Source: Klebsormidium nitens (Eukaryota > Plantae > Klebsormidiophyceae). From it: DNA of 64,000 nucleotides. The translations under genes and the position numbers were made by a program. Under the pieces are notes generated by a model. The model was not told the origin of the DNA and did no database searches. It saw only the letters and a list, made by a program, of their open reading frames with translations. Below are positions 15,177 through 43,517 of this stretch, in pieces; position 1 is the first letter of the stretch; every line of letters begins with the position of its first letter. The stretch lies in the NCBI GenBank assembly GCA_000708835.1, contig DF237409.1:11286-75285 (forward strand), in the 5' to 3' direction.

Positions 15177-18100
15177 TTAGCGCACCATGCTCGCCAAAAT
15201 CAGTGCACGAGCCATGATATCGTTTGCCACAAAATCCTTCTCCGCTCTCCTCTCCTGCCGGCGCTTGTTCTTAGCCCTTTTCGCCGCTGTCCGCTCATAG
15301 CGTTCCACATAGGCTAGTCGGAAGCGCTCAGCAATTGGTACTAAACTAGCATCAGCAGACCTCTGAGTTTCTTCCAGGTCTTCCTTTTCGTTCCCTACCT
15401 GGTGTGCCCAACTTGCCGGATCAATGCCATCCAATAAGGGCCCATCTAAAGGCTCTTCCAATCGTGCATAGTATGGAAGATCTCGCCTCCGCTTTGGATT
15501 GACTGTAACTCGAGGAAACTCTCTTTCCAATCGGAGCAGAGACGCTTCGTCTACAGAAGGCTGCAAACAGAAGCAACTGTTTATTAGGAAATCGAGGCAC
15601 ACTTTACGTGGTCACGAGATGGCTGGGTCGTATCGATATTGATGCATCGTAATCGTGGCCACCTGACATACACTCTAAGTTCTCACTGCAACAACACGTC
15701 TTGACTTTCAACTTCCACTGCCATTGCGGAGAGCAAGACCAGTTGAAGAGGAAATCAACGGTGGTGCCAATAATTACAGACCGCTTCAGTCGGCGCCGAG
15801 ACGAATGCTTTCAGTTCGAATTTCATTTCTCGCCCAGCATAATAGCAGATCATTAGCAGATCCTCCATAGGAAACGAACGTCATTTTGAAAAAGCAGGCC
15901 AATACAAGCATCGCTGTAAACTGAATTCCGGCTTCGATAAGGATACTGAAGCTGGTTCAAATCTCTGATGAAGGACTTAGAAATCCGACATGTTCAGATT
16001 TGAACCAACCAGACCTTACACAGACACGTCAATCCAAGAATCACCTGCTTAGATCGCTTGAAGAAGCTAGAGTCTAGAGTGAGGCTTGACATCCGAATGA
16101 CCCTCAGTTCGATCCAAAGGCGTCAAGACAGCTTTGCGAATATAGTAGCCTCTTCTCACCCAAATCAGCCAGTCCAACGCTCCCGCCCCCACGGCCACCT
16201 TGTCGACGTTCACCTCCTCCCAACTTGACGACTCCTCTGCTGACTGCAGCTGCGGTACCAGGTGCTTGATCGACCGCTGCGCCGTCCGGTTGCTAATGGC
16301 GTCCCCCCTGCTCTAGGAACCGTCGATCAGGGGAACGCCTAATGCGTGCGGTGTCTCTAGAAATCTCGAACGTTGAGGCTCGAGACGGAGACACAAACAG
16401 CGTGTCTTTGATTTGAGAAGCGGTACTACCAATTCGCATTAAGAAACCTGAAATAGCTGATGCGGACATACGCGCAAAGGAGACACGGTCGAGATAGGAA
16501 TCATCAAGGGGTCTCTCCAGAATCTGTGCTTTTCAGAGCGCAACTTGAGCAAAGCGTTTTTGAACGACTCAAAGGCTGCAGCTTTCTGCTTCGGTTGTTG
16601 TAAGTTAACAGGAGAGACCTTGACGTAGCCTGGCGGGCGTCTAAAATGGCCCGTCGAAATGTGATAGTACGCGATCGCCAAGAAGGACAGAGACGCTCAC
16701 CCTAGTCGTAACGTGTGAATCTCCGGACAGTGTCGGACGAGGGCCTCAATGCTTTTCGACGAGATGTTCGGACAGCACCTGCGGGGAAGAAGCGACATTA
16801 TTGGAAAGGATTCCCAGCCCCGTTTGTTGCGAAAGCAGACGACTCTTACTGTCACAAAGGGCACAGCCGGCCCTTTGAACGGGTCTCTGCCTGAGATCGA
16901 TACTTATGCTCGTTTCCTTGAGCTGCTGACGAAGTGTTGAAGGGCAGAGCATCTCTTTGAGCCTTTCTCATCAATCGAGAGCACAACATCAGACATCGAA
17001 TGTGGCGCCGCTGGTTTCGAGTTGGTGTCCTGAATTCCTCCTCGAAACTAGCCCAAAACTGGTCCCCAGACCCATCGTTCGGCACAGATCAAGTATAGGT
17101 GGATACGCAAACGCTCCACAGTCGCTTGAACAAGTGCTCTTGGGTATAATGCGAACCACTTCTTTAACTCACAAACCATGTTAGACTGCCAGGACAACCA
17201 CAGATTCTGATCCAAAAAGCGCCCTCATCAGTCAAAGATTTGACTAAAGCCTTGAACCTTGCAACCTTGGGCAAACTAACCTCAAACTAACCTCAAACTA
17301 ACCTGATGTCCACGGCCCTCAAGCCTGGGCATGTCCTGGCGACTGCAGTGATGCCCTCAGCCGTCACCCCCGAACCTGATACATCCAAAATCTCGAAACT
17401 CTCGTCACACAGGGCCACCAGTATTTTATCGTTCAGGAGATTGCGTCGCCTGGCGATGGCGATGAGGGGGGCCTGCACCAAGACCAAGACACCTGATGTC
17501 AAACCACATGCATCGGAAATCTGTATTGAACTCCCCTTATCTGAAGGGCCCCTTGTGAGGAATAAAACACGAGGGCGAGTAGAACTTCGGTACACTGTAG
17601 AAAGATTTGGTCACTTAATTCTCAGAAGTTAGGCTGCGGGTATGGAGGAGGGGTGTCACAGCAGGGGTGCAAGAGCTCTTCGTCTCGGGCCATTGATCAT
17701 GCTTCGAAGTGTTGCTGTAAGTGGTTTCATGCAAGTGCGCACATCCTCTACTTTTCCCACTGTCCATGCGCCAACAGACGCAAATTTCTAATGCAAGTGA
17801 CCATCTCGCCTCCAGATCATCAAGGAGCTGCCATCATTTCACTAATGTCGCGGCACACAAAAGTTGCTTTTGAGCCTGTGTTCGGGGCGCCAACTCAAGA
17901 ACCTTCCTGGATTCGAGCACCTCGAAACTCTCAAAAGTTTCTAAACAGAAGGGCTCACCTTGGCATTTTGTGGCAGAATCCTCCCCAGGACCTCTACATC
18001 GTCCATCAGATCCTCCAAGCTGCTGCCCAGCAGCCCCAAACACAGATTCGACAGCCTGAACGGTCCCTTCGCCTGTTTCTCCGCTTCCAGAAACCCAGCC

Positions 18101-18426
18101 CTCCTGGCATTTGCCGCAAGGATCCCCCTCCCTAACGGCCCTGTCGCCTGCGCTTCTAGAAACGAAGCCTTGCGATGAAACGGAGTGGCTGTCTTATGCG
18201 AAGAAGTCCCCGTCTGATTGCTGCCCTCGCACCTGCTACTGCTTGCAGAGCGCCCGCTGCTATTTCTTTCCATGTCCAGGTCCAATAGCTCGTTCGCAAG
18301 AAGGTCCAGCTCGTAAGAATCGAGGTTCAAGTTTGCCAAAGCCCCGGGGGCGTCTTCAAGCCAAGCGACGTCTGAACTGGGCCCCAATGAGGGGTGGTGC
18401 CGGAGGCCGTGCCCAGCGCGCAACAT
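15177..18426 (-). CDS. RNI-like/AMN1-type leucine-rich repeat protein (At4g26980-like), 5 exons
   Basis: Exons 18426-17959, 17472-17303, 16778-16701, 16307-16160 and 15560-15177 join in phase: LSNLCLGLLG...IARRRNLLND...EILDVSGS...LRAVDIR-CCPNIS...SSWEEV...LDWLIW-PSVD...IAERFRLAYVER...KRAKN. Confidence 0.85.
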
Positions 18427-19031
18427 GACAGCGCGCTGACGCCTCCGCTTCCGCCGCTGGGACAGAGCGTCCTCCGCACGATGTCAGAGATTGCCAAAGC
18501 CGAATGTCTTTCTATCAGAAAGCACTTAGTAAAACGACTGAACGCTTTGAGGCGCCCAAAACTGACAGTGAGTGTCTGAAGACCTACGGTTCCAAGTGAC
18601 TCTGCATCTGCTAGTGCAGGCTGTTGAGTTCAACTTCAGGAGAGTGTGTCACCTGCTTGCTGGAATCTGCCCAACTGAACTAGCTGAAGCAAGCTGTAGT
18701 TGGGTTCTGCACCTGGCCTCCACCTGAGGCTGAGGCGCATGGATGTGTTGAAAACCAATACCGTATCGGCAACGGAATCTAAGCCGTCGGATCCGAGTCC
18801 AGCGGGACTAGAGCGGGGCGAAAATCGTAACTGGTGTAGGGCAAATTTGTGCTTAGCGTAAGTTAAAGCAAACTTAGGGCTTGCCTCCATTTCATTGTTC
18901 AATTTGTAACATCTGCATTCTTGAGACGCTTCTTCTCCACCAGCCGCTCAATAAGCCGGAGCGTTTTGCTGAGATCACGGGCCGCCAGCATTGCACTGCA
19001 AAGTTGTTCCCTTGCACCGCTGCTGCTCTAG

Positions 19032-21421
19032 ATGGCTTCCGAAACTGATGCTGAAGAAGACTTGATGGAAGGTGAGGGGAGCCTTGGGTTCAATTTGGTT
19101 TTCAGCGTTGTTGATGATGATGCATGAGCTAAACTGGAAGACGTCACATAAATGTCTTGACAGCGGTCATTGGTATGTAAGACTTTCTTTAGCGATAGCC
19201 CCGCTTTTGCCAGATTGCCAACAAAGTGGGTACAAGGTTTTGTGAAGGCTGCTTCATGAGCAGGGATCTTACAGTTTGAAGGCTGGCCCTGCAGCCTGCC
19301 CAGTTCCGATGAGCCATACCCAACTTCAAAATCACTTGTCCAGGTCTTGATGCGGCCCGCGGCGCTGACGACGATGATTTGTACGGTGACTTGTACGCTG
19401 ATGTTGGTCAGGGGAAGAAAGTCCTCAAGACCGAATTGCAAGAGGTGCAGAGACAACCGATTGGATTTGGAGAAGAAAGAGAACCTTTCTCTTACTGCAA
19501 AGAAGCAAATGTTTTTGCTTTATACCACTAGAAATCTCACAACCCAACGATCCGTTGATTGATTGCTGCTAGTCCATTTTGGCGTTGTTGGTCTGGCTTA
19601 CAAAGCATCTGTCACTGTTTGATATTTGATGTTTCATTGTTTGATGCTTGTCATTGTGATGATTCATTCTTCATTGTGGTGTGAAAGCTGATGCATCAAG
19701 TGATGCTTGGTAGACGAGTTTTATTCAATCCCCTTTCTGGTGGTGTAACACTCCAGTTGGAGGAGAGGTATGAACGCAGCCAAGCTCAAGTACAGGAGTT
19801 GGAAGAAAAGGTGAATCGTGTTTTCCTTGTATGCAATGACACTGAGGAGGCATGTCGCTCGAAGCTGCGCAACTCTTGTGAAGCAATCAGATGGTTCATC
19901 CGCTGCCAACAGCCACCTTGTGAATTGAAAGTCCGCTTGCCAAGGGGAGATTGATGACGCATCTGAACAACTTCATGATTGTCGAGTGCCCTTGGGAACT
20001 GATCAGGGATATAAGATGAAGGCATAGCACTTTTCTGAGACGTTGCGCTAGTTCTGATGGGTCTCCTTGCGCCCTGCGACAGACTGCAAAGCTTGAAAAC
20101 GAACGAAGGATCCTCATCAAAAACATATCCGCCCTTTTCAAAGTGAGTTCGGTTCACGCCTGCCACGCCTTTCTGCTGTGTTGTTTTGTATGCTCCTACT
20201 GCTGTCTGCAAATCCTCATTGCAGCATGAGCAAGCCTGACGTTCGTCTGATGGTTCTCAATCGACCGAATGATTGAGAGACATAGTGTCTCTTCCTGACC
20301 GTCGGATCCTCCCAGCTCACACGAATGCCCTCTTAACTAAGAAACGGCTGGGATTGTTTTCTGTTCCAGACCGCTCAGATGGAGGTTAAGCGAAAAGACG
20401 TGCAGATTAGCGAGCTTCGGCAAGAGTGAGGAACCTGCAGTCTTGAGATCTCCCAGTCTGATTACTCTCACTGCTGCAGATGGAAGTCTTGGGATGTTTG
20501 GCTTTCTCAGCGAGCTTCGACTTCAAAAACTTGCTGGTCTTTGAAACAAAGACGTTCTTTCCATTTGTCTGGTGGCTTCTATTCACAAACCATCAAACGC
20601 TGGACTTTGTTACAGACCATCGCGCATGACCTTAATGTCTGGAAACCCCTTGCTTTAACCGTCCTGCCTAAAGTACTAGAGATGGACGCTAAAGGACACG
20701 TCAAATACCCCTTAGTAGTCGGCCCTTGTGTGCAGCATGGCAAAGGCGAGAGCTTACATTGAGTCGAGGCTGACCCGTCCAGCTTCTCGAGATAAGGAAC
20801 GAGGGGGATCCGTCAAGCCCGAAAACCGAGGGGAGGTGAGGGTCAGTTCGGTTGATTTGGGACTCCCTTTCTGCTCCGTTCCCAGCCGCTTCTTTCTTTC
20901 CCTCTCTCTCTCGTTCCTATGTCGTTCCTCAACACCCATGATCGATGCAAGCGCGCTGCTTGTCATTCTTGAAGACCGAAATACAGGACAACGCATGTCG
21001 ATTCAGCGCAGCGCTGATTGGTTTGGAAGGCCGTCTTAGCACCTTTTCAGATCATGGTTTCGGTTCGCTCGTTCAGTCGATATGACGGCCTAACTTCTTA
21101 AAGGTTGCTCGTTTCACCGCGGAATCGAGTCTGGACTCTCTTGATGTCGTATCATCGTTGTTTACAAGTCGACGTGCGTTCTCGGAGGAAGCAAAAACCT
21201 CATAACCGGGGGTAGACGTGCAAAACTAGATGCTGCAGAGGGTTGATCTTAGGCAGGGTAACGAAGAGATTCTTTTCAACGATCTGCAGAGGGAGCGGAG
21301 CCGGTCTGTGGACGTTGCTGGGGTTCGGCGGGCCAACGAGAGTCCTTCAGGAGAGCCGTCAAGGCATCGTCCCAGCCAAGGGCCGGACTCCTCGTCCCGT
21401 TTTCGAGATAGGCCCGGATAG
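19032..21421 (+). CDS. Small coiled-coil protein resembling the FLASH/CASP8AP2 N-terminal domain, with an Arg/Ser-rich tail
   Basis: Phase-consistent exons 19032-19071, 19344-19444, 19757-19810, 20083-20142, 20370-20425, 20736-20835 and 21290(or 21239)-21421 give MASETD...DDDDLYGDLYADV...LENERRILIKNISALFKTAQMEVKRKDVQISELRQD...RERSRS...RPG*. An alternative stop lies at 20429 if the intron after exon 5 is retained. Confidence 0.7.
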
Positions 21422-22268
21422 GCACGCGAACTATGTCAGAACTAAGTTAAACACCAACTTCAAGTTCAAGATTCTGTACCCTGCGCAGCCGAGTGTCTCT
21501 GCAGTGAAACTTCCTGGACATTGCATAAAGTGCGGTATCGGCGTGTCCCGTATGGCCTGTACGGTGATCAAGAAGGTTTAGTGCCGAGGGTTGCTTGACC
21601 GCATTTTATGTGATGAAGACATGCAAAGAGTGCATTACACTTGCACGCATGAACATCAACGGTTTCGGCCCAATTCCATCCATCTATGTGAGATAGCTAT
21701 ATGTATATCTTAGGCGCCGCGGAAGACCTAGGATGTGCTACTGCGCATGGTTTTTCTCTGCTTGATTCATCTTAGCACGCGGATCGCTGCCCATGCGCAA
21801 AACTCTCAGTTGTACGATCCGCAGAGGTGTGACCCAGCTCTATTACATGTACACACGTATACATGGAATCTGCATGACAACGTTGAGAAAGCGGCGTCGG
21901 CTCCCACATGCCGACGCATGGAGCTTCAAAGCACTGCAAGCGCTTCACAGACCTAGGTGGCACGACTGTCCGACACATACATCTATTTGTAATTAATTAA
22001 ATTGATAAATTAATTTGGGCGAGTCAAGATGGTCGTATGAGTTAGTGCTCAGCTTTATGCGGGACCAAAGTAGCACTGCACAACAGCACAGGTGAGATCG
22101 AAAGCCAGTCACTGAATCGAAGAAAGACCTGTGAGACGTTACCAACGGCCAAGCTATTATTTACATGAATTCCCCCTCGGATAGTCAGAAGACCTAAAGC
22201 GATTCTATCCTACAGTATGGAGTTCGCTGTCGATAAGATTTGCTGATCCTTGCCAACCCCTATAAGTA

Positions 22269-25200
22269 CTACCTTGCTTTCGCATACTCCAGTCCAGTAT
22301 CTAAGATAGCAGGCAGTTGCTTGAGCGAGCTCATTTGCGTATACAACATCGGCGTGCACCCCTGCGACATAGCTATGTCGCTTTGGCCGCCACTACTATA
22401 GCTACCCCACACCAACCCCGTACCGCTCGCCTTTACCCCTTCCGTCATTTTAGTTGCCGCATTACTATCCGGTGTCCTTCCAACATCCATGCTTTTCGCG
22501 CCCATATGCGTATACTCCTCCTCGTCACTTCGTTCTGCGTCCCCGTGATCGCCCCGCTCAGACGAACAGGTCTCCTGGAAGCCTTCGTCGTCGTCCTCTT
22601 CCTCTTCGTCCTCGTCTTGTGGCGCGCCTCGAGGCTTCCACTCGTTGTAATGTTGCTCCACGAATCTGCGCACAGCAACAGCTTTTGGTTACAGCACTAC
22701 ACAAAGCTTTCAGCGGAGCAACGAGGTGAGCTCTCTGGAGAGGGAGGGATCCGAAGAAAAACAGGAGAGAAAAGCGTCCCACGGTTCTCCGTGTCAGTCG
22801 TGTCTTGTGGATGAGCCGTTGAATCTGGCGGCTTCCAGACTCGAGCATGTTCCGATCGAGGGCAAGAGTTTCTCCAAAGCATCAACCAATGGGAAAGAGA
22901 CGGACTACAGAGCAACGCCAACAGGACAGAAGCAGCGGCAACAATTATCCACACCAAGATCCGGACGACGAGCTCAAGAACGGCAGCGGAACAGAAACGG
23001 AAGCAGAACGATATAGTGGGCGCTCACTTGAGGGACGCGGGCAGCAGGTAGGGATCGAACGGGAAGAACATGTCGAGCTTGTTGTGGCGCACCGCCCCCG
23101 GTCGCCCCTCGGACCGCTCGTTGCGCTGCAGGACGTCCGAGCAGTCTAGCAGGTCGAAAGCCGCGGCCTGGGCGCAAAACTCCTTCACGACCGCAGGCAA
23201 GCACACCTGTACGAGGAAGAAAGCCGAGAGTCAGAAGGAGTGTGGTACAATGGTCGTCACGTGAATCAGAACTCCAAGTACCATCTCTACGTTATCCTCG
23301 AGAAGGTCGGGCTGATTTTGACTGCAATGAATGCGGTTGGGGGCGCATGAGAGAAGCACCGGACCCTGCAAACCTGCTTTTCAACAGGTCGGAATCCTCG
23401 CCCGACTCGCCTCCCAAAGCTTCACAACACGTAGGTCCTGAACAGCAGCAGCGACCGTTCGGATCCATCTGAGAGCCCTGGGCCCGCCCTAGACCACAAT
23501 CTTGCAAGCGAACCAAGACTGTCGAATCCACTCTGCGTCGACAGCCCCTGACGCTGGACGTCCGAGCTTGTCAAGCGGTCTCCTCGCGTGACAGTGCGCG
23601 AGTTGGCATTTACGCCAACTTCACCGCAGTCTTGACGAGAACTGCGTTCATTGTGGGCTCACCTTCATTGGGTTCAACGCGTGGTGCACGATCTCGCGCA
23701 GCGGCATCTGTTGCAAGGCCTTGCTCAGCACGGGGTCCTTGCTGAGGGCCTCCATCCGGTAGCACAGAATGTAAAAGATGGCCTGCGGGAAACGATCGTT
23801 TGAATCAATACAAGGCCTTCGGAAGGGCAGGCTGTCGCACCCTCACCGCTACGGCCAGCTGCATGCCTAGAGCAGGATGTAAAGACTGCACCAAGTCGGG
23901 GGCCGTCAATCTTCATGGTCTCTCCAATCTTTGCATACAAAGTTGGACATTGCGCCAAAGCAAAGAGCGGATAAAGACTAGGGCTTGAGTAAGAACGGAA
24001 ATCTAAGGAGTGGAAGCGGACAGGCGTCGGCAACGACTTTTCACGATGGCGGGGCCACTCGGTTGCCAAAAAAACGCATATGTCGCTTTGTTACCTCTTG
24101 GGACGACTCTGTCCATCGGGAGCTGCTGCTAGCACTTCACAATAGAAGTCTCTATCCCGTTCAAAATCAGGCTGTGCCACGCCAGAGAGGCTTGCCCAAG
24201 TGTGGGTAAGAATCAAATGCTTGACATCCTCCTAGCAGAATGTCCTTGAGGAAGGAGCTAAGCCCTCACCTGGCAGGCCGAGTAGAAGACGCCGTGCACG
24301 CCCGCGCCTGGCGGGAGACTGTCCGGGTTTGCCATAAGGAGGTCGCCGACGCGGGATGATGCCAGCATGCGGACGTACGAAACGGCCCAGTCCGAAAGCC
24401 TGCTCAAGAACGAGGCGAAGCCAAATGAGTGCGCCAATTAGTGAAAACCCGGAAAGGGGTTCCAGAGAACATTGGGTCCCGGTTGAAGGTGACGTGCGCC
24501 CCGTAGAACAACCGTCCGAATTGTGCTGCAGTCTGAGGCAGCGAGGAAACAAAACAGGGATACGACTGGCACAGCGCTGACGCAGTAGCGTCTGCAGAGG
24601 TTGCCGGGGACGAAGCTCGGCAAGCTACGCCGGACACAGTATCGGATACGCCTTGCGAACCTCAATACCATTCTGCGGAAGGTCGATTGAAGCGGTTCTC
24701 GGCAAGCAGCCGCTCACCTTCGTAGGGAGCTTGACACGACTGAGAGGGGCACATAGTCGGCGCGGGCCAGGAAGCTGGCCAGATAAGCCGCTCCTGCCAT
24801 CCTGCAATTTGCACAGCCGTTGTAACTCGTCAGTGTTTGTCCTTACGAGAATACCCAGATCCTCGAGGTTGAGCAGTGAGCTTGGTACAGAGAGGTTAGC
24901 GCTCTGTGAGATTTAAAGCCCTGCAACAGCCCTGCAACAGCGCGCTTTGAATTGACTTCTATTCGCAGACTCAAGGGCGTTCGCAGACTCAAGGGCGTCG
25001 CGAAACGAGACCCACAAACGCCACGGGAGAATGAAAGGACGAGGAGACCGCGTAGAAGGGAAGGCCGAAGGCTTGCACAGAGGCTAGCTCAGTAAGATGC
25101 AGACATTGTCAGCAGCATCGAGAAAGAGAGCTTCTGCTTCGCAGACTCAACAATGTTGCAAACAAGACCCGACAAGAGTTCACCACAAGACGTAGACAGG

Positions 25201-35523: not shown

Positions 35524-38500
35524 ATGAGGGCCAGCACTGCTTCCAAGGCGTTGCTCCTGCTGGCGCTCTTTGCGCTAGCCAGCGTGCATGGTGAGGTTCT
35601 TGTACCTGCTTCACTTTTGTTTCTTCTGTTTTTTGTCTTTCCTGCTAAGCTTTGAGCTTTCTCTGCAAAGCCCTGACCTTTTTGCTGGCTTTATCCTCTG
35701 TCTGCTCAGCCTCATCACATTGGCGAACTTTACTTCTGCAAGTGAGGATAACATCAGCTGCTCCATGATGGCAGTATTCCTGAGGTATTTTCCAATCAGT
35801 TTCGGTCCTCAGAGCTCTTGCTGTGAGAAAGAAGTCACAACCTTGGGAGAGGAGCTTGGTTGCTGACATACAAACGTCGATCATTGTGCTGACCAAATTG
35901 AAGGCCTCTCTATGGTCAAATTCAGCTTCTTTCATTGTCATCCTTCTCTCAATCGTGGGATTCCTTTGATCTAGTTTGCCTAGAAGAAGATAAATGCGCT
36001 GCAGAAGGTCTTACATCGATTGCAGAGTGTGTTTGCTTCGATTGATACAATCAGGTCTTGGGAGTACTGGCATGGGGCACTCATCACACATTTTTAAGCA
36101 ATAGCTTCACACTTAGCAGACATCTGGAAAGTTTTGGTTGAGCAGGGTGAAAGTCAGGAAGGCTCAATTGCTCTCAACCAGATGAAAGCACTTCTACATA
36201 AGCTTTGGGGGAACCGTCTTCGCAGTATATCACAAGAAAGCCAAAGGGGGCCATTCTGAGGACATACATCAAGGTTCGCTGCTGCCAGAAGCTCCTACAG
36301 GAGCGTAAGCAAGTGGGGCAATGCATGACAGCTGCTAACGAGCCAGTCAAGCTGGGGCTGACGTTTCACTACTATGACTTTTTGCAGCCCAAATACAACG
36401 GGATGATGGCACCAACCGACAAGGTGAGCACTCAGCCAGCTGCTGATCTGATCATAGATGATGATGTTTCCCATTGGCTGGTGTTTCTCTAAACTCTGTT
36501 GAACACCCCTATGAGATCGCCACAGCAGATGAATATTCAGGTTCTGGAGTTATCTAGACTTTTAGGGCATGTTCTGAACAGTATCTGGCATCTCCTGTCT
36601 CTCAACCTGCACTTAGCCTATCCTGATTGATGCCCAGTTCTAATTGAGTTTATGTAATTTGACATAATCGGAGCACTTTTTTCTGGAATTATTCTTTACG
36701 TGTCTCATCAGACTCTTCAAGGCCTCTGCTCATTCCGATCTAGGACAGTGCTTACTGTGCTTAATCCCTCACTGTTCAACTCCCATCTATGGCCGCCCCC
36801 CTCAGCAAATCCAGCTCTATCAACCTCGTCTACTGTGCTCTGCTCACACCCTCGCTAACCCCACTCTTAATCCACTCCCCTAACCCTAGCTAACCTGGCT
36901 CCTAATCCCTGCAGAACTGGAAGAAGAGAGCTCCGGCCAGTCCCGCAAGTTCCTGATGTCCAAGGCCCGCACCGCCGCGCTCGCTGCCGAGAAGAAGTGG
37001 AACGAAACTCACCACCCAAAGACCGGCAAAGCCCCCGCCCCCGCTCCCGGCCCGGTTAAGGGTTCCATCAAGAACCCGACGACTACCAAGGACGGCCTAG
37101 CGGAAATCTCGGAGCTTACCGTGATTAACGTCGGCGCCGGGCTGGTTCCGTTTCCTGTGCCCAAGCCCGTCGGCGCGGGAGTCAACGGCAAGGGGAACAA
37201 CGGCAAGGGAGCCCCCGCCCCCGCCCCGGTGGGGCGAGTCAGTGACATCAATATCACGCAGGTTGCGATGTGAGTGGCTTGACCTCAACTGGAGTAGAAT
37301 CCTCAAGATTGTCTGCTGACGAATGCTCTTTTCAAAGAATCCTCAAAGTGATTTGTCGAGAGAGCGACGGTGAAGCTTGCAAAACGAGCTGAAAGCTTGA
37401 GAACTTTCAGTCAGATTGTCTGAGCTGACAGCAAACAAACGAAGCATGTTTCCTTGCACGTCCTTCGACGTCGTCCGATTGCAGAAGACCGCGATTGACG
37501 CTTGAACTTCACAGAATGTATACTCGAAGTCGCTTCGTCATCCTTTTCCTGGACACGTTTTCTCGTTGCTTCTTTGCGGTGTCTCGAGTGAAAATTCGAA
37601 TAATTCTAACCATCAGTAACCAAAGGAACAAATTTTGCATCACTAATATAACTACACTGTGTTTGAGAAAGAAGAATGTCCTGAAGCTCAACGATGTCTG
37701 GCAATCTCTTGCAGTGTGGTCCAGAACGCGGGCGTGAAGGGCAGTCTGGCTGAGATCGAGGAGGCCATCAAAAACGGAACAGCGTCAGGAAACACGCTCG
37801 GGGCAGTCCTCCAGTCGCTCGTCCTGGGCGTCAACGCAACAGTCCCCAGCGGTGACGCTTTGGCAACCGGTGAGTGCTCGAAACTCTTGACATTTGAAAA
37901 CAGGGGAAGAGCGAATTTCTGGTTGTGGCAGCCTATCCTGAAACGACATGTTTCGTTTCTTAGTGTCTATGCGTACCCTAGCAAGAAGGCCGAAGGGGTT
38001 GTAGAAAAGGAGGCAGAAAGCAGAGCAAGCTCGCGGAATGGAACGATCTCAAAGCAGAATTCATTTAATTTTTCAAGAAGTCGATGTTGCAAATTTCTGA
38101 AGAAGTAGCTGTGCCGATGACACACTTTTTAAATGCGCTTCCATCCGTCCGTGACCCGCCTTCCGTTTCTCTTCCAACCGTTGAAACAACGATTAAAAGC
38201 AGCTCATATTAAGAAACCCGTCTCACCAGCATGCAAGAAGAGCCAAAGCAGACGGGCACACGACTAAAACAATCTCGTTTCTTTCCCCCTTCAGGCTGCG
38301 TCTGTCCCTTCGTGTACAACCCGGTGTGCTCAGAGGGCATCACCTTCTCCAACGCCTGCTTCGCGGGATGCGCCAACGCGACCAACGTCACAGACGGCGC
38401 CTGCGGTACGTTCCTACTTCACAGCTTCTTACAGCGAATCCTCTGGGCAACGGGGCCGAGTTTCTGCCAACTGTTTCTCAGCTAGTAATAACGGCAGATT

Positions 38501-41500
38501 TGTTCCCTCTTTTGTGAGTAAACAGTTGAGTGCGCACTTCTCACACGCGCTTCGGTCAGCCTCCTCACGCTTGCATTCGTTTATTCGGCGCTGCTGCGCT
38601 TACCTTTCGACAGCCTTCGACCGTATCCGCAATTTCCCAGCTCCCTGCTTTCTCACTCCCGTTCTCGCATTCTGAACCCTTCCCCCTCCCTTTTACAGAA
38701 ATAGCCACCCCCAACCCTACCGCCCCGGCCCCTTGCGACCCCGTCCCGTCTCCCTCCCCGGTCCCGTCTCCCTCTCCTTCCCCCTCCCCCCTCTGCGAGG
38801 GCGGCAGCGAGACCCCCACTCCCGGGTCTCCCAGCACCCTGGGCGTCCAGGTTCCCAACGCCGCCAGCCCCCAGCCCTCCGCCTCCCCCTCCGCATCTCC
38901 CGAGCCCTCCCCTTCGTCCCCGGCTCTCCCCTCCGCCTCCCCGGTTCCGTCCCCCTCTAGTTCCCCGGCTGCCTCTCCCTCCGCCTCCCCCGAGCCCTCC
39001 CCTTCCTCGTCCCCCTCCCCTCTCCTTCCCCGGTCCCTTCCCCGTCGAGCTCCCCGTCCCCTCCCCTCCGCGGAGCCTTCCCTCCCCCTGCCTTCTGCTT
39101 CCCGGTTCCTCCCCTCCGCCGAGCCATCTTCGTCCCTCTGCCGTCAGCATCCCGCTTCCCTCCCCCTCTGCGGAGCCTTCCTCGTCTCCCGTCCCCTCCC
39201 CCTCCGCTCAGCCGTCGGCTTCTCCGGTCCCCTCCCCCTCTGCGGTGGCGTCTCCTTCCCCCCTCCCCAGCCCGAGCGCCGTTGCCAAGCCCCCCAGGGG
39301 CAGCAACCCCGGCGGCACCCCTCAGGGCAACCCCGTGACTGAGGCTCCCGCGCCAGGTAAGCGCTGCTTAAATTTGCGTGAACAATGGAACTCTTTGTGA
39401 GCGTGCAAGTCCGGAGCAGTCTTTCCGTACATAAACACACGAATCACACAGAAGTTGTGATTCGACTCGCTGCGATGCTTACGTAAGAGAGGGTAGTTCT
39501 GCTCGTATGGAGTCCGCTCTGCAGATTGACCCGATTACAAACAACAACTTCTGTTCTGCCGGGCTAACCGGAACACAGCACCTTCCATCTGCTTGATTTG
39601 TCGAAGCAAACTGCTGACCTGAGATTGTCGAATTCTGCAGCTCCTGGCTACCAGCCCCCGACCCGCGTCCCCAACCCCCCTCCCCCCCGCCCCACCAAGG
39701 GCGTCGTCTCCCCCGTCGACACCCCCGGCGAAGCCCCCGGCAGCGCGCCATCTGGCAGCCCCACCAACGCGCCAAGCGGCAGCCCCACCGACGCGCCAAC
39801 TGGCAGCCCCACCGACGCGCCAACTGGCACCCCCACTGACACGCCAAGCGGCAGCCCCACCGACGTGCCAGCTGGCAGCCCCGGGAACGCGCCAGCTGTT
39901 GCCCCGTCGCCCGTCGGCACCGACCGCCCCCAGCCGTGCCTGGATGCCAACAATACCCACACCCCCGCTGACGGCCCCGCGCCATTCTCCATGCCCGGAT
40001 ACGCCCTTCCCCCCACAATGGCGAGCAACGGCCCCGCCCCCGCCCCGGGGGGTCCCAGCGCGGCTCCTTCCGGCTCCCCCACAGGCGCCCCCGCCCCCTT
40101 GAACAGCGTACCGTCGACTCCCGGGGGGGAGCCCACGAACGCCCCGACTTCGACTCCCACTGCCACCGACACCCCCTCAGGGACGAACACCCCCTCGGGA
40201 ACGAACAGCCCCTCAGGAACAAACACCCCCACGGGCACTGACACCCCCTCAGGGACGAACACCCCCTCAGAAACCAAGACCCCCTCTAGCACTTCAACCC
40301 CCTCCAGCACCGACACCCCCACAGGAACGAACACCCCCTCAGGAACCAACACCCCCTCTAGCACTTCAACCCCTTCCAGCACCAACACCCCCTCAGGGAC
40401 GAACACCCCCTCGGGAACCAACACCCCCGCGGGCACTAACACCCCCTCAGGGACGAACACCCCCTCAGGAACAAACACCCCCTCTAGCACTTCAACCCCT
40501 TCCAGCACTGACACCCCTTCAAGCACTAACACCCCCTCCGGAACGAAGACCCCCTCAGGCACCGACACCCCCGCAGGAACCAACACCCCTTCCAGCACTT
40601 CGACCCCCTCCGGCACCAACACCCCCTCAGGAACGAACACTCCCTCTAGCACTTCGACCCCCTCGGGAACGAACACCCCCTCAGGAACCAGCGCCCCATC
40701 TGGCACTTCGACCCCCTCTGGCACCGACACCCCCTCTGGAACAAACACCCCCTCGGGAACGAACACCCCCTCTGGCACTGACACCCCCTCAGGAACGGAT
40801 ACCCCCTCGGCAACGGGTACCCCCTCCGGCACCGACACCCCCTCTAGCACTTCGACTCCCTCAGGCACGAACACTCCCTCGGGCACGAACACCCCCTCAG
40901 GAACCAACACCCCCTCAGGCACTGACACCCCCTCAGGCACCAACACTCCCTCAGGAACCAACACCCCCTCAGGCACTGACACCCCCTCAGGCACCAACAC
41001 CCCCTCAGGCACCAACACCCCTTCAGGCACGAACACCCCNNNNNNNNNNNNNNNNNNNNACGGCACTCGACACCCCTCACGGCACCAACACCCCCTCAGG
41101 CACCAACACCCCTTCAGGCACGAACACCCCCTCCGGCACCACCGCTCCCCCCGCCAAGACCACGGCCCCCACCCCCCAGGCCACCAAGAACGGCCCCATC
41201 GGGAGCCCCCCCGACTTCGGCTCCCCCGCCGGCGAGCCCACCAACTCGACCCTCGCGCCGGTCCCCACCAAAACCCCGACCGGCACCCACACCCCGACCG
41301 CGACCCCCAAGGCGACTACGGTACCGAGCGCGACCACCAAGCCTGGTTCCAACACCCCGGGGTCTGTCACACCCGCTCCTGGTGCCACTACCCCCCCGGT
41401 AGCGACCCCCGGTTCGACCACCCCCGGCGCAACCCCGGTCACAACCCCGACCGTTACGATGGCCACCAGGCCCCCGGTTCAGACCCCCGGGCCGACTACT

Positions 41501-43517
41501 CCCGGCGCCACCGCCGCCCCTGGTGCCACCCCCGTCCCGACCACTCCCGGCAGTACACCGGTCTCGACTCCCACCGTCACAATGGCGACGCAGCCCCCGG
41601 TTGGGACCCCCGGACCGGGCACTCCGACCGGAACGAACACCCCCACCGGAACGAACACCCCCACTACCCCCGGTGCTTCTCAGCCGGCGCCCACCCCCAA
41701 GGCGACGCTCCACGGAACGCCCAGCGGAACCGGGTCGACCCCGGGGACCCACGTGCCACCGAGCGACGGACGCCCCGAGCCCTGCACAACCGGGAACGGC
41801 ACGAGCTCCTCAGCCAAGGGCGATCGTGAGTTGACCCAGACATTTTTACTTGTTTGATTTTAAGACAAATTGGTGGGGCCAATGAGACCTTAGAGACCTT
41901 TGCTGTCCGCATATGAACGAGCGTGCAGAGTTAAGGTTAAGGTCTGCAGTAAAACTTCTGCGCTTCTTCTTCGAAATTCTTTTTCAAAGTACTTCGGATG
42001 CCAAAAAGACGCTTCCGTAATACACGATAAAGCAAGCTATCACCGAAGTTCAACCAAGAACTTTTCAGATTCAGCAGTCTCGCCAGTTGTGGGACAAAGC
42101 CGAACCTTTTGACTGAGAGCTTCTCTTCGAACCGTGCAGCTCACTTCGTCGGCAAGCACGGCGAGAAATTCGACTTCAACGGCGAGCCCGGCCAGTCGTA
42201 CTGCCTGATCGCCGACAAGAAGATCCACATCAACATGCACGTCTTCGGCGGCAGGAGAGAGGGCACCACGGTTAGTGCTTACCCGCTTTCCTTACCGGCC
42301 ACTCGTATTGGCCAATGTTCGCTTCTTAGCATTCCTTCGTCTCTTCGTCTCAGACTACTCCTAGAAATTGCAAGAAAATTGCCACTGCTTTCCACTGGAT
42401 GGCACGTCTCTGGAACTTAAAATACATCTCTGGAACAGACACAGATCCGTTCTCAAAATCTGTCAAAAGTCCTGACAGTACTCACCTGAACCCCGGCTAA
42501 CCCTTCCTTAATCCTCCCCGCAGTACATCGACGAAGTCGGCATCCTGTACAAGGACATTGAGATCTACGTCGCCGCCAAGTCCGCTGAGGGCACCAAGTG
42601 GCGCGACTTCCAGGGGGCCGTTTCCGTCAACGGAATCGAGCTCCCCGCTTCCGACGTTGACATGACCGTCGAGAATGTCGCCATCTCCCGCAACAGGACG
42701 TCGGTGCGCGTGACCGCCCCCGGCTGGTTCGACATCACGATGGACATCGCGCGCGCGAGCTTCTGGCAGAACGGCCCCGGAGCTAACTTCGTAAGTTGAC
42801 GCTCCTGTTCTCTTCAACTGTCTTGGACTTCGTACTCAGCAACGGTCCTGTGTCCGCAACGGTCCTGTGTCCCTTTCCTCATTTTACGAAACAATCTGGC
42901 ATTGAGGGGAGTGCTAGAAGGCAGAAAACGTCATATTGGCTCAAGAAATTGATTGGAAAAGGTCAATAAGTTCTGAACCAGGTTCTCCGTTTTACCTGAC
43001 TAGGAAGGCTTTGTCAAACGCGTCTGTTCTTATCCTTCAGACGAGCACAAATGTTCTGTCTCTCAATTTCACCTCTTTTCACGACCCCAGCTTCGAGATA
43101 CCAAGAATTTCCTGTTCCCGTTTACCTGAACCCTCGAATTATCACTCACCCACACTTCTCCCCCCGCCGCAGATCAACTTCAAGGTCTCCCAGCTGCGCG
43201 TGACCCCCACCGTGCACGGCGTGCTCGGACAGACCTACCGCGAGAGCGACCGCACGTACAAGAAGATGGCGCGCGCCGAGGTGTCTGCCGTGCGCGGCAA
43301 CGGCCTCCCCGCTTTCATGGACGGCTCCGAGGAGGACTACGAGACGAGCGGGATCATGAGCGCGGACTGCAAGTTCGGCAAGTTCCAGATGGTCAGCCAG
43401 GTGGAGAAGAAGACCAACAGTTCGGGGGGGAGGAGACTGCTGGCGGCGGAGGGAGAGGATAAGATGGTCGTCGATGCCGGCTGCGTTGGGTTCGGGAATG
43501 AGGTCCGGTGCGAGTAA
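35524..43517 (+). CDS. Large secreted mucin/HRGP-like glycoprotein: signal peptide, Kazal domain, Ser-Pro repeats, Pro/Thr/Ser repeats, GDPH motif and root-cap (LEA-related) domain
   Basis: Exons 35524-35590 (MRASTASKALLLLALFALASVH), 36915-37269, 37715-37869, 38295-38405 (Kazal CVCPFVYNPVCSEGITFSNACFAGC...C), 38699-39356 (SP-rich, with apparent homopolymer frameshifts), 39641-41825 (PTS repeats, spans an N gap), 42140-42270, 42524-42790 and 43173-43517 (GDPHFVG...FDFNG...YCLIAD..IHINMH...VHGVLGQTY...YETSGIMSADCKF). Confidence 0.8.
38745..39280 (+). repeat. Ser-Pro (SPSPS/SAEPS) coding low-complexity repeat
   Basis: C-rich TCC-CCC repeats inside the 38699-39356 exon. Confidence 0.85.
39745..39888 (+). 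repeat. 24-bp coding repeat, octapeptide [A/T/V]P[S/T/A]G[S/T]P[T/G][N/D], 6 units
   Basis: Translation reads APSGSPTN APSGSPTD APTGSPTD APTGTPTD TPSGSPTD VPAGSPGN. Confidence 0.85.
40168..41140 (+). repeat. 18-bp coding minisatellite, hexapeptide TPSGT[N/D/S], about 50 units; true length unknown because of a gap
   Basis: The ACCCCCTCAGGAACGAAC-type unit is repeated in tandem and interrupted by Ns at 41040-41059. Confidence 0.95.
41040..41059. other. Assembly gap (20 N)
   Basis: Run of N inside the minisatellite. Confidence 1.

Follow-up and report, generated by a model that had tools for sequence, protein, structure and literature searches.

A stand-alone FLASH N-terminal-like protein in the streptophyte alga Klebsormidium nitens

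The window analyzed here is a 64-kb stretch of contig DF237409.1 (assembly GCA_000708835.1) from the streptophyte alga Klebsormidium nitens; all positions are given in its coordinates. At 19032-21421 of its plus strand it carries a FLASH-like gene, defined by spliced RNA contigs, with seven exons, six introns, and a 180-aa product. This protein, KFL_004600060 in the databases, is almost certainly homologous to the domain at the N-terminus of FLASH (also called CASP8AP2), judging by sequence comparison. By analogy with the animal system, it probably acts as an adaptor in histone precursor mRNA (pre-mRNA) processing of the type that depends on U7, a small nuclear ribonucleoprotein (snRNP). The family to which it belongs is already known outside animals, and the surprise expressed in the initial annotation at finding it here is therefore dated; the K. 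nitens member itself is still annotated as hypothetical.

Similarity to the FLASH N-terminal domain

KFL_004600060 was the query wherever a search with the complete protein is described. In a phmmer search against the sequences of the PDB, the best matches were to the N-terminal domain of human CASP8AP2 (6AOZ/6AP0 and 6ANO, with E values of 9.2e-8 and 1.5e-7), where residues 25-102 of the query aligned with residues 7-88 of the chain, which correspond to human residues 56-137. The next matches, laminin and Homer coiled coils, had E values of 0.059 and worse. When 11 sequences, all from Viridiplantae and none from animals, were combined into a profile, this recovered the N-terminal domain of the human FLASH protein with an E value of 6.6e-15, the runner-up being at 0.041. 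With the single sequence and the plant-only profile, the FLASH matches exceed the best unrelated coiled coil by 19 to 41 bits. A mixed plant-animal profile gave an E value of 3.7e-27, which is partly circular, as vertebrate FLASH was among its sequences. The initial annotation had proposed a comparison with FLASH profiles as its own check, and by the margin over the best unrelated coiled coils (0.04-0.06) the similarity lies far above chance; the human FLASH segment that it had quoted agrees with the human sequence given in the HMMER alignment to 6ANO/6AOZ.

An exhaustive phmmer search of 1.84 billion cluster representatives identified 142 proteins at E<=1e-3, which are mostly short and matched at their N-termini. 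Among the long proteins retrieved by the same search are the CASP8AP2 proteins of three vertebrates, namely a snake (1982 aa), a frog, and a fish, with E values of ~3-5e-4, and mosquito proteins that resemble dipteran FLASH were also recovered. In a feature search of the ESM Atlas, the chordate "C8AP2" cluster ranked third with a score of 0.90. By its significant similarity to human residues 51-137, KFL_004600060 belongs to the FLASH/CASP8AP2 N-terminal domain family.

Several other searches returned nothing of use. Single exons had no matches (Pfam for five exon pieces, PDB for exon 4), because pieces of 18-43 residues are too short. The complete protein had no significant domain in Pfam, just sub-threshold matches to generic coiled-coil families, and its structure-based neighbors in the Atlas were unrelated helical proteins, a result that is uninformative for a single helix.

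Conserved residues and predicted fold

In human FLASH, the LDLY motif at residues 55-58 is required for binding of the histone cleavage complex, and residues 100-137 bind Lsm11; the double substitution L118A/I119A abolishes Lsm11 binding and leaves the dimer intact, and K129 and D130 pair at the dimer interface (Aik et al. 2017, PMC5636114). Counterparts of both elements can be recognized in the algal protein. The sequence DDLYGDLY, encoded by exon 2, occupies residues 24-31 and lies 52 residues ahead of the Asn of an NIS motif, so that the spacing of about 50 residues given in the initial annotation holds. The HMMER alignment places human D56-L57-Y58 on D25-L26-Y27 and human L55 on D24; farther along, it pairs human L118/I119 with L83/F84 and human R128-K129-D130 with R93-K94-D95. 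An LDLY-type motif precedes the coiled coil, as in the human protein.

We aligned 28 sequences from green algae, land plants, an oomycete, insects, and vertebrates. In K. nitens numbering, the columns that show no variation are L76, N79, S81, T86, A87, E90, R93, and K94; Y27, I80, and L83 come close to this. The signature N-I-S-x-L-x-x-T-A-x-x-E-x-x-R-K, which does not follow the heptad pattern, is unchanged across kingdoms. Within the acidic motif, L26, Y27, and L30 are invariant among 11 green-lineage relatives. Positions that never vary from plants to vertebrates fall in the stretch that binds Lsm11 in the human protein; at the level of sequence, the Lsm11-binding segment (human residues 100-137) is conserved, with all eight invariant columns within it.

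The AlphaFold2 monomer model, computed with an alignment, shows a single helix at residues 34-116 with a predicted local distance difference test (pLDDT) score above 95 across residues ~41-110, a short helix over the LY motif, and a tail that is disordered; the composition of this tail is rich in Arg, Ser, Pro, and Gly. Between L41 and L101, the hydrophobic a/d heptad pattern has no break. Compared with the equivalent 75-nucleotide (nt) exon of Volvox, the moss Ceratodon, and fish, exon 3 is shorter by exactly 21 nt: one heptad is gone and the register is kept, because exactly seven residues were removed. One relative (P0027) has the same gap.

Gene structure and transcription

The gene is transcribed and spliced as modeled (Table 1). 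The evidence comes from Logan contigs placed on positions 18300-22800, which derive from four public runs belonging to four studies; the RNA nature of these runs was guessed by the tool, and spliced forms are present in them. The contigs show the presence of exon joints and not transcript ends or levels. The six introns (19072-19343, 19445-19756, 19811-20082, 20143-20369, 20426-20735, and 20836-21289) all begin with GT and end with AG, and each joint was found in spliced contigs in all four runs. Translation starts with the ATG at 19032 and stops with the TAG at 21419-21421, which gives a coding sequence of 540 nt plus the stop codon, or 180 residues. Start, stop, and length agree exactly with those of the initial annotation, whose splice junctions are likewise borne out by the contigs. 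The peptide that it had quoted is also present on the plus strand: in a three-frame translation of positions 18800-21700, exon 4 ends in RRILIKNISALFK and exon 5 begins with TAQMEVKRKDVQISELRQ. As it had also pointed out, the gene is absent from the list of open reading frames (ORFs) of at least 60 aa, because every exon is too short.

Table 1. Exons of the FLASH-like gene and approximate extent of its transcript (window coordinates)
Feature	Position	Strand	Description
Exon 1	19032-19071	+	40 nt; residues 1-13 plus one base; acidic head including EEDLMEGLD; contigs in four runs join 19071 to 19344
Exon 2	19344-19444	+	101 nt; residues 14-47; DDDDLYGDLY, the putative counterpart of the human LDLY motif; spliced contigs
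Exon 3	19757-19810	+	54 nt; residues 48-65; coiled coil begins; spliced contigs
Exon 4	20083-20142	+	60 nt; residues 66-85, TAKLENERRILIKNISALFK; first half of the predicted Lsm11-binding segment
Exon 5	20370-20425	+	56 nt; residues 86-103 plus two bases, TAQMEVKRKDVQISELRQ
Exon 6	20736-20835	+	100 nt; residues 104-137; end of the helix, beginning of the disordered, basic Ser/Pro/Gly-rich tail
Exon 7	21290-21421	+	132 nt including TAG; residues 138-180; disordered tail without a Myb/SANT domain
Transcript, approximate extent	18910-21620	+	in four runs, the first contig pieces begin at 18910-18921 and the last stop at 21580-21620

The window matches DF237409.1 exactly across the 22-kb stretch that was compared. 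A word search with the stop-free frame at 20719-21036, which opens shortly ahead of exon 6 and extends into intron 6 (106 codons; residues 1-46 scoring), returned a single protein, KFL_004600060 (P0001) of Klebsormidium nitens, 180 aa in length, and comparison by a local script showed that it is identical to the spliced product.

Unspliced contigs were also found over every intron between 19072 and 21289 in all four runs; pre-mRNA, intron retention, or DNA carry-over are possible sources. Read-through at the exon 5 donor meets a stop codon at once (TGA at 20427-20429), and the resulting product of 104 residues would contain the N-terminal domain only.

Intron positions shared with a fish, a moss, and Volvox

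Exon boundaries of the homologous genes from Volvox, Ceratodon, and the fish Gouania willdenowi (CASP8AP2) were mapped on their loci by a local script, with positions counted from the Asn of the NIS motif. Two phase 0 introns, at -39 and -14, are present in all four species, the first of them lying at -32 in K. nitens as a result of the 7-codon deletion; the exon between them is 75 nt long in Volvox, moss, and fish and 54 nt long in K. nitens. A phase 2 intron at +24 is found in K. nitens, Ceratodon, and the fish and is absent from Volvox. The remaining intron, at +6 in phase 0, is common to K. nitens and the moss, is missing from both Volvox and the fish, and is streptophyte-specific. K. nitens and Gouania willdenowi CASP8AP2 thus have three introns in common, in both position and phase, and to this extent the structure of the algal gene is shared with an animal FLASH gene. 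That three phase-matched introns would coincide by chance within ~75 codons is very unlikely (~2e-6 by a rough estimate).

Distribution and domain content of the relatives

Among the named matches, the green lineage is represented by chlorophytes (Volvox, Astrephomene, Pleodorina, Tetrabaena, Chlamydomonas schloesseri, Trebouxia, Apatococcus, Auxenochlorella, Parachlorella, Picochlorum, Pyramimonas, and Cymbomonas), streptophyte algae (Klebsormidium and Mesotaenium), and land plants, namely the moss Ceratodon, the lycophyte Diphasiastrum, the ferns Ceratopteris and two species of Adiantum, and the conifers Cryptomeria and Taxus. Outside the green lineage, named matches come from brown algae, an oomycete, Capsaspora, and a sponge, besides insects and vertebrates. 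Nearly all green-lineage relatives are annotated as hypothetical; Trebouxia KAL3142590.1 is named "CASP8 associated protein 2" in NCBI.

The C-terminal Myb/SANT-like domain that marks full-length animal FLASH was not detected in KFL_004600060: neither this protein nor any of seven green-lineage relatives (276-455 aa) has a significant match to any Pfam domain, Myb/SANT included, whereas snake CASP8AP2 carries the C-terminal Myb-like domain PF21227 (E=1.5e-20). As far as domain searches can tell, the green-lineage proteins consist of the N-terminal domain only. Along with the profile searches, the conserved residues, and the shared introns, this agrees with the initial description of a stand-alone FLASH N-terminal-like protein.

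In the oomycete Aphanomyces astaci, one protein (RHZ11524.1, P0047, 641 aa) has the FLASH-like domain (residues 4-89) joined to PIH1 N-terminal and CS-like domains; this may be a real fusion or two merged genes.

Proposed function and alternative explanations

We propose that KFL_004600060 works in the way established for the human and Drosophila proteins (PMC5636114; PMC12774660). Two copies would form a parallel coiled-coil dimer, and the C-terminal half of the coiled coil (residues ~65-102) would bind one N-terminal extension of an algal Lsm11 within a U7-type snRNP. The pairing with Lsm11, together with the acidic LY motif (residues 24-31), would then recruit the cleavage module, comprising CPSF73, CPSF100, symplekin, and CstF64, and this module would cut histone pre-mRNAs just past the 3' stem-loop to yield tail-less histone mRNAs. 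Because it does not have the Myb/SANT end, through which animal FLASH is attached to NPAT in histone locus bodies, KFL_004600060 would act only as a processing adaptor.

Recent work on this pathway provides the context for such a role. SLBP, LSM10, LSM11, and FLASH, the last detected via PANTHER family PTHR15489, have been reported widely outside animals, with LSM10 and LSM11 found in green algae and land plants among others, and stem-loops were described 3' of the H2A, H2B, and H4 genes of K. nitens itself (Zhao, Bond and Ni Leathlobhair, bioRxiv 10.64898/2026.10.14.759114). Histone mRNAs that carry stem-loops and are tail-less, along with SLBP, were documented in green algae, a moss, a fern, and cycads and were lost in Selaginella and angiosperms (Genome Biology 2026, PMC13130582); that paper makes no mention of FLASH or Lsm11. 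Our own literature search for CASP8AP2 with plant and algal terms found nothing relevant. The distribution of the named FLASH-like matches appears to parallel the published distribution of SLBP and tail-less histone mRNAs. These two papers also bear on how the initial annotation framed the gene. It rightly placed the gene in a plant-lineage genome, but reasoned from land plants, whereas the organism is a streptophyte alga, and to assume, as it did, that this pathway is not used in the plant lineage is no longer up to date.

Several observations weigh against a U7-type role. An Rfam scan of the 64-kb window gave no matches, and thus neither U7 nor a histone stem-loop, and we know of no green-lineage organism in which experiments have shown a U7 small nuclear RNA (snRNA). 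In K. nitens, Asp takes the place of the first Leu of LDLY, the counterpart of human I119 is Phe (F84), and the K. nitens coiled coil is one heptad (7 residues) shorter than in most relatives. Pfam has no FLASH N-terminal family, so no curated threshold can be applied. No angiosperm appears among the named matches; these are only part of all matches, and the word search was confined to a length window. The stem-loops of K. nitens were described as divergent, with none after H3 and no canonical uridine in the loop (bioRxiv 10.64898/2026.10.14.759114).

The strongest alternative, which we nonetheless consider unlikely, is that KFL_004600060 is a true homolog of the FLASH N-terminal domain that has been repurposed: it would still dimerize and perhaps recruit the CPSF73 module, but for a process other than U7-guided cleavage of histone pre-mRNA, such as general or snRNA 3'-end formation, or it would serve as an unrelated scaffold. 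The evidence for homology fits this alternative just as well. The lack of a U7 RNA known to us from the green lineage, the divergent stem-loops and the H3 genes without one, the missing domain that ties animal FLASH to histone loci, and the fusion to PIH1 domains in one oomycete gene model would all be consistent with it. On the other hand, the residues that have stayed invariant for more than 1 billion years are those that bind Lsm11 in human, LSM10 and LSM11 have been reported in green algae and land plants, and the named matches, among which there is no angiosperm, parallel SLBP and tail-less histone mRNAs in their distribution. Of the two possibilities raised in the initial annotation, a retained stem-loop histone mRNA pathway is favored over a repurposed module.

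It is very improbable that the gene model is wrong or the gene unexpressed, that is, that the locus is a pseudogene or encodes a longer protein with a missed Myb/SANT exon. The unspliced contigs in all four runs and the 104-residue product of read-through at the exon 5 donor might be taken to suggest this, but every joint was recovered from each of the four runs, the model and the annotated protein are identical, and the green-lineage relatives are likewise short and without Myb/SANT. Furthermore, the contigs end ~200 nt past the stop codon, and a convergent gene, RRN3, starts ~400 nt beyond.

Least credible of all is a generic coiled-coil protein that resembles FLASH by chance or composition: the sub-threshold Pfam matches to many coiled-coil families, the lack of matches to single exons, and the unrelated helical neighbors in the Atlas would fit it, but it is already contradicted by the 19 to 41 bits that separate FLASH from the best unrelated coiled coil, by a non-heptad NIS...RK signature that is invariant across kingdoms, and by the three phase-matched introns common with fish CASP8AP2.

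Returning to the adaptor role, we give equal weight to accepting and to doubting a broader scenario that would join these observations. The LY motif and coiled coil, ~100 residues in all, may represent the complete ancestral FLASH, with at least three introns already in place in the common ancestor of plants and animals. In the green lineage, it would survive as a mini-protein on its own in all groups that retain SLBP and tail-less histone mRNAs (algae, bryophytes, lycophytes, ferns, and gymnosperms) and would have been lost with them in angiosperms. If this is true, streptophyte algae and non-flowering land plants would have a U7-type snRNP with an undiscovered guide RNA, and KFL_004600060 would offer a handle for its purification. 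In practical terms, the algal Lsm11 particle could be isolated by means of a tagged copy, and the green lineage's missing U7-like RNA sought in this way. The proposal assigns a putative function to an unannotated K. nitens protein and brings a candidate adaptor subunit to the case that histone mRNA processing of the stem-loop type is older than animals. Three points may be new: the form of green-lineage FLASH as a stand-alone mini-protein that lacks the locus-body domain, the coincidence of its invariant residues with the site that binds Lsm11 in human, and the three introns that an alga and a vertebrate have in common.

Neighboring genes

Downstream, the FLASH-like gene is followed by a convergent gene for the Pol I initiation factor RRN3 (PF05327; 22269-29584, minus strand), with ~400 nt between the transcript ends. 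The same two genes adjoin each other in three species: they are convergent in K. nitens and divergent in Volvox and Chlamydomonas schloesseri. RRN3 is not a neighbor in Trebouxia or Ceratodon, and no RRN3 match was found beside the Parachlorella gene, where two neighbors have no Pfam match. The adjacency could be ancient microsynteny or coincidence.

Upstream, a divergent gene on the minus strand (15177-18426) encodes a 415-residue protein with no Pfam match. Its transcript contigs reach ~18634, which leaves a gap of ~280 nt to the first contig of the FLASH-like gene (~18910), and the two genes may share a promoter region. Farther along the window, positions 38000-42000 have a G+C content of 0.63-0.66 and a strong excess of C over G, and are followed by an ORF (42936-43517) with a match to Root_cap (PF06830, E=5.8e-9).

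In Trebouxia sp. C0009, a gene for an LSM-domain protein (L006 16774-17838, minus strand) lies 6 kb from the FLASH-like gene. It was considered as a candidate for Lsm10 and rejected, as its exons resemble the shared Sm protein D3 when judged against the human sequence, and its proximity is probably a coincidence.

Comparison with known FLASH proteins

The FLASH proteins of Drosophila and mosquitoes (~800-900 aa) resemble KFL_004600060 in the N-terminal pair of motifs and the coiled coil, which were recovered by the exhaustive phmmer search, and differ from it in their length, in having additional regions, and in a diverged NISSLLLTA sequence.

Another parallel is with the short proteins of the green lineage, such as those of Trebouxia (KAL3142590.1), Volvox (VOLCADRAFT_117560), Mesotaenium (ME000114S10939), Ceratodon (KC19_7G001800), Diphasiastrum, Ceratopteris, Adiantum, Cryptomeria, and Taxus. 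They have the same architecture, in which an LYxDL motif at the N-terminus is followed by a coiled coil containing NISCLFKTA...RKD and by a disordered tail that varies, and they are 30-40% identical to KFL_004600060 over the aligned N-terminal regions. The K. nitens protein differs from them in its 7-residue deletion in exon 3 and in the usual Cys of NIS-C-L, which is Ala in K. nitens, as in animals.

Human FLASH/CASP8AP2 (residues 51-137; 6ANO, 6AOZ, and 6AP0) is a far larger protein, of ~1,980 aa versus 180 aa in K. nitens, with an Ars2-binding middle region and a C-terminal Myb/SANT domain that are both missing from the algal protein. Within the shared part, it has LDLY where K. nitens has DDLY and I119 where K. 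nitens has F84, and its coiled coil is longer by one heptad. The overall plan is nevertheless the same in the two proteins: ~50 residues separate an acidic LY motif from the NIS-A-L-x-K-T-A ... R-K-D that comes after it in one long helix. The Lsm11-binding residue L118 and the K129/D130 ion pair are both kept in the algal sequence, and the change from I119 to Phe is a conservative one.

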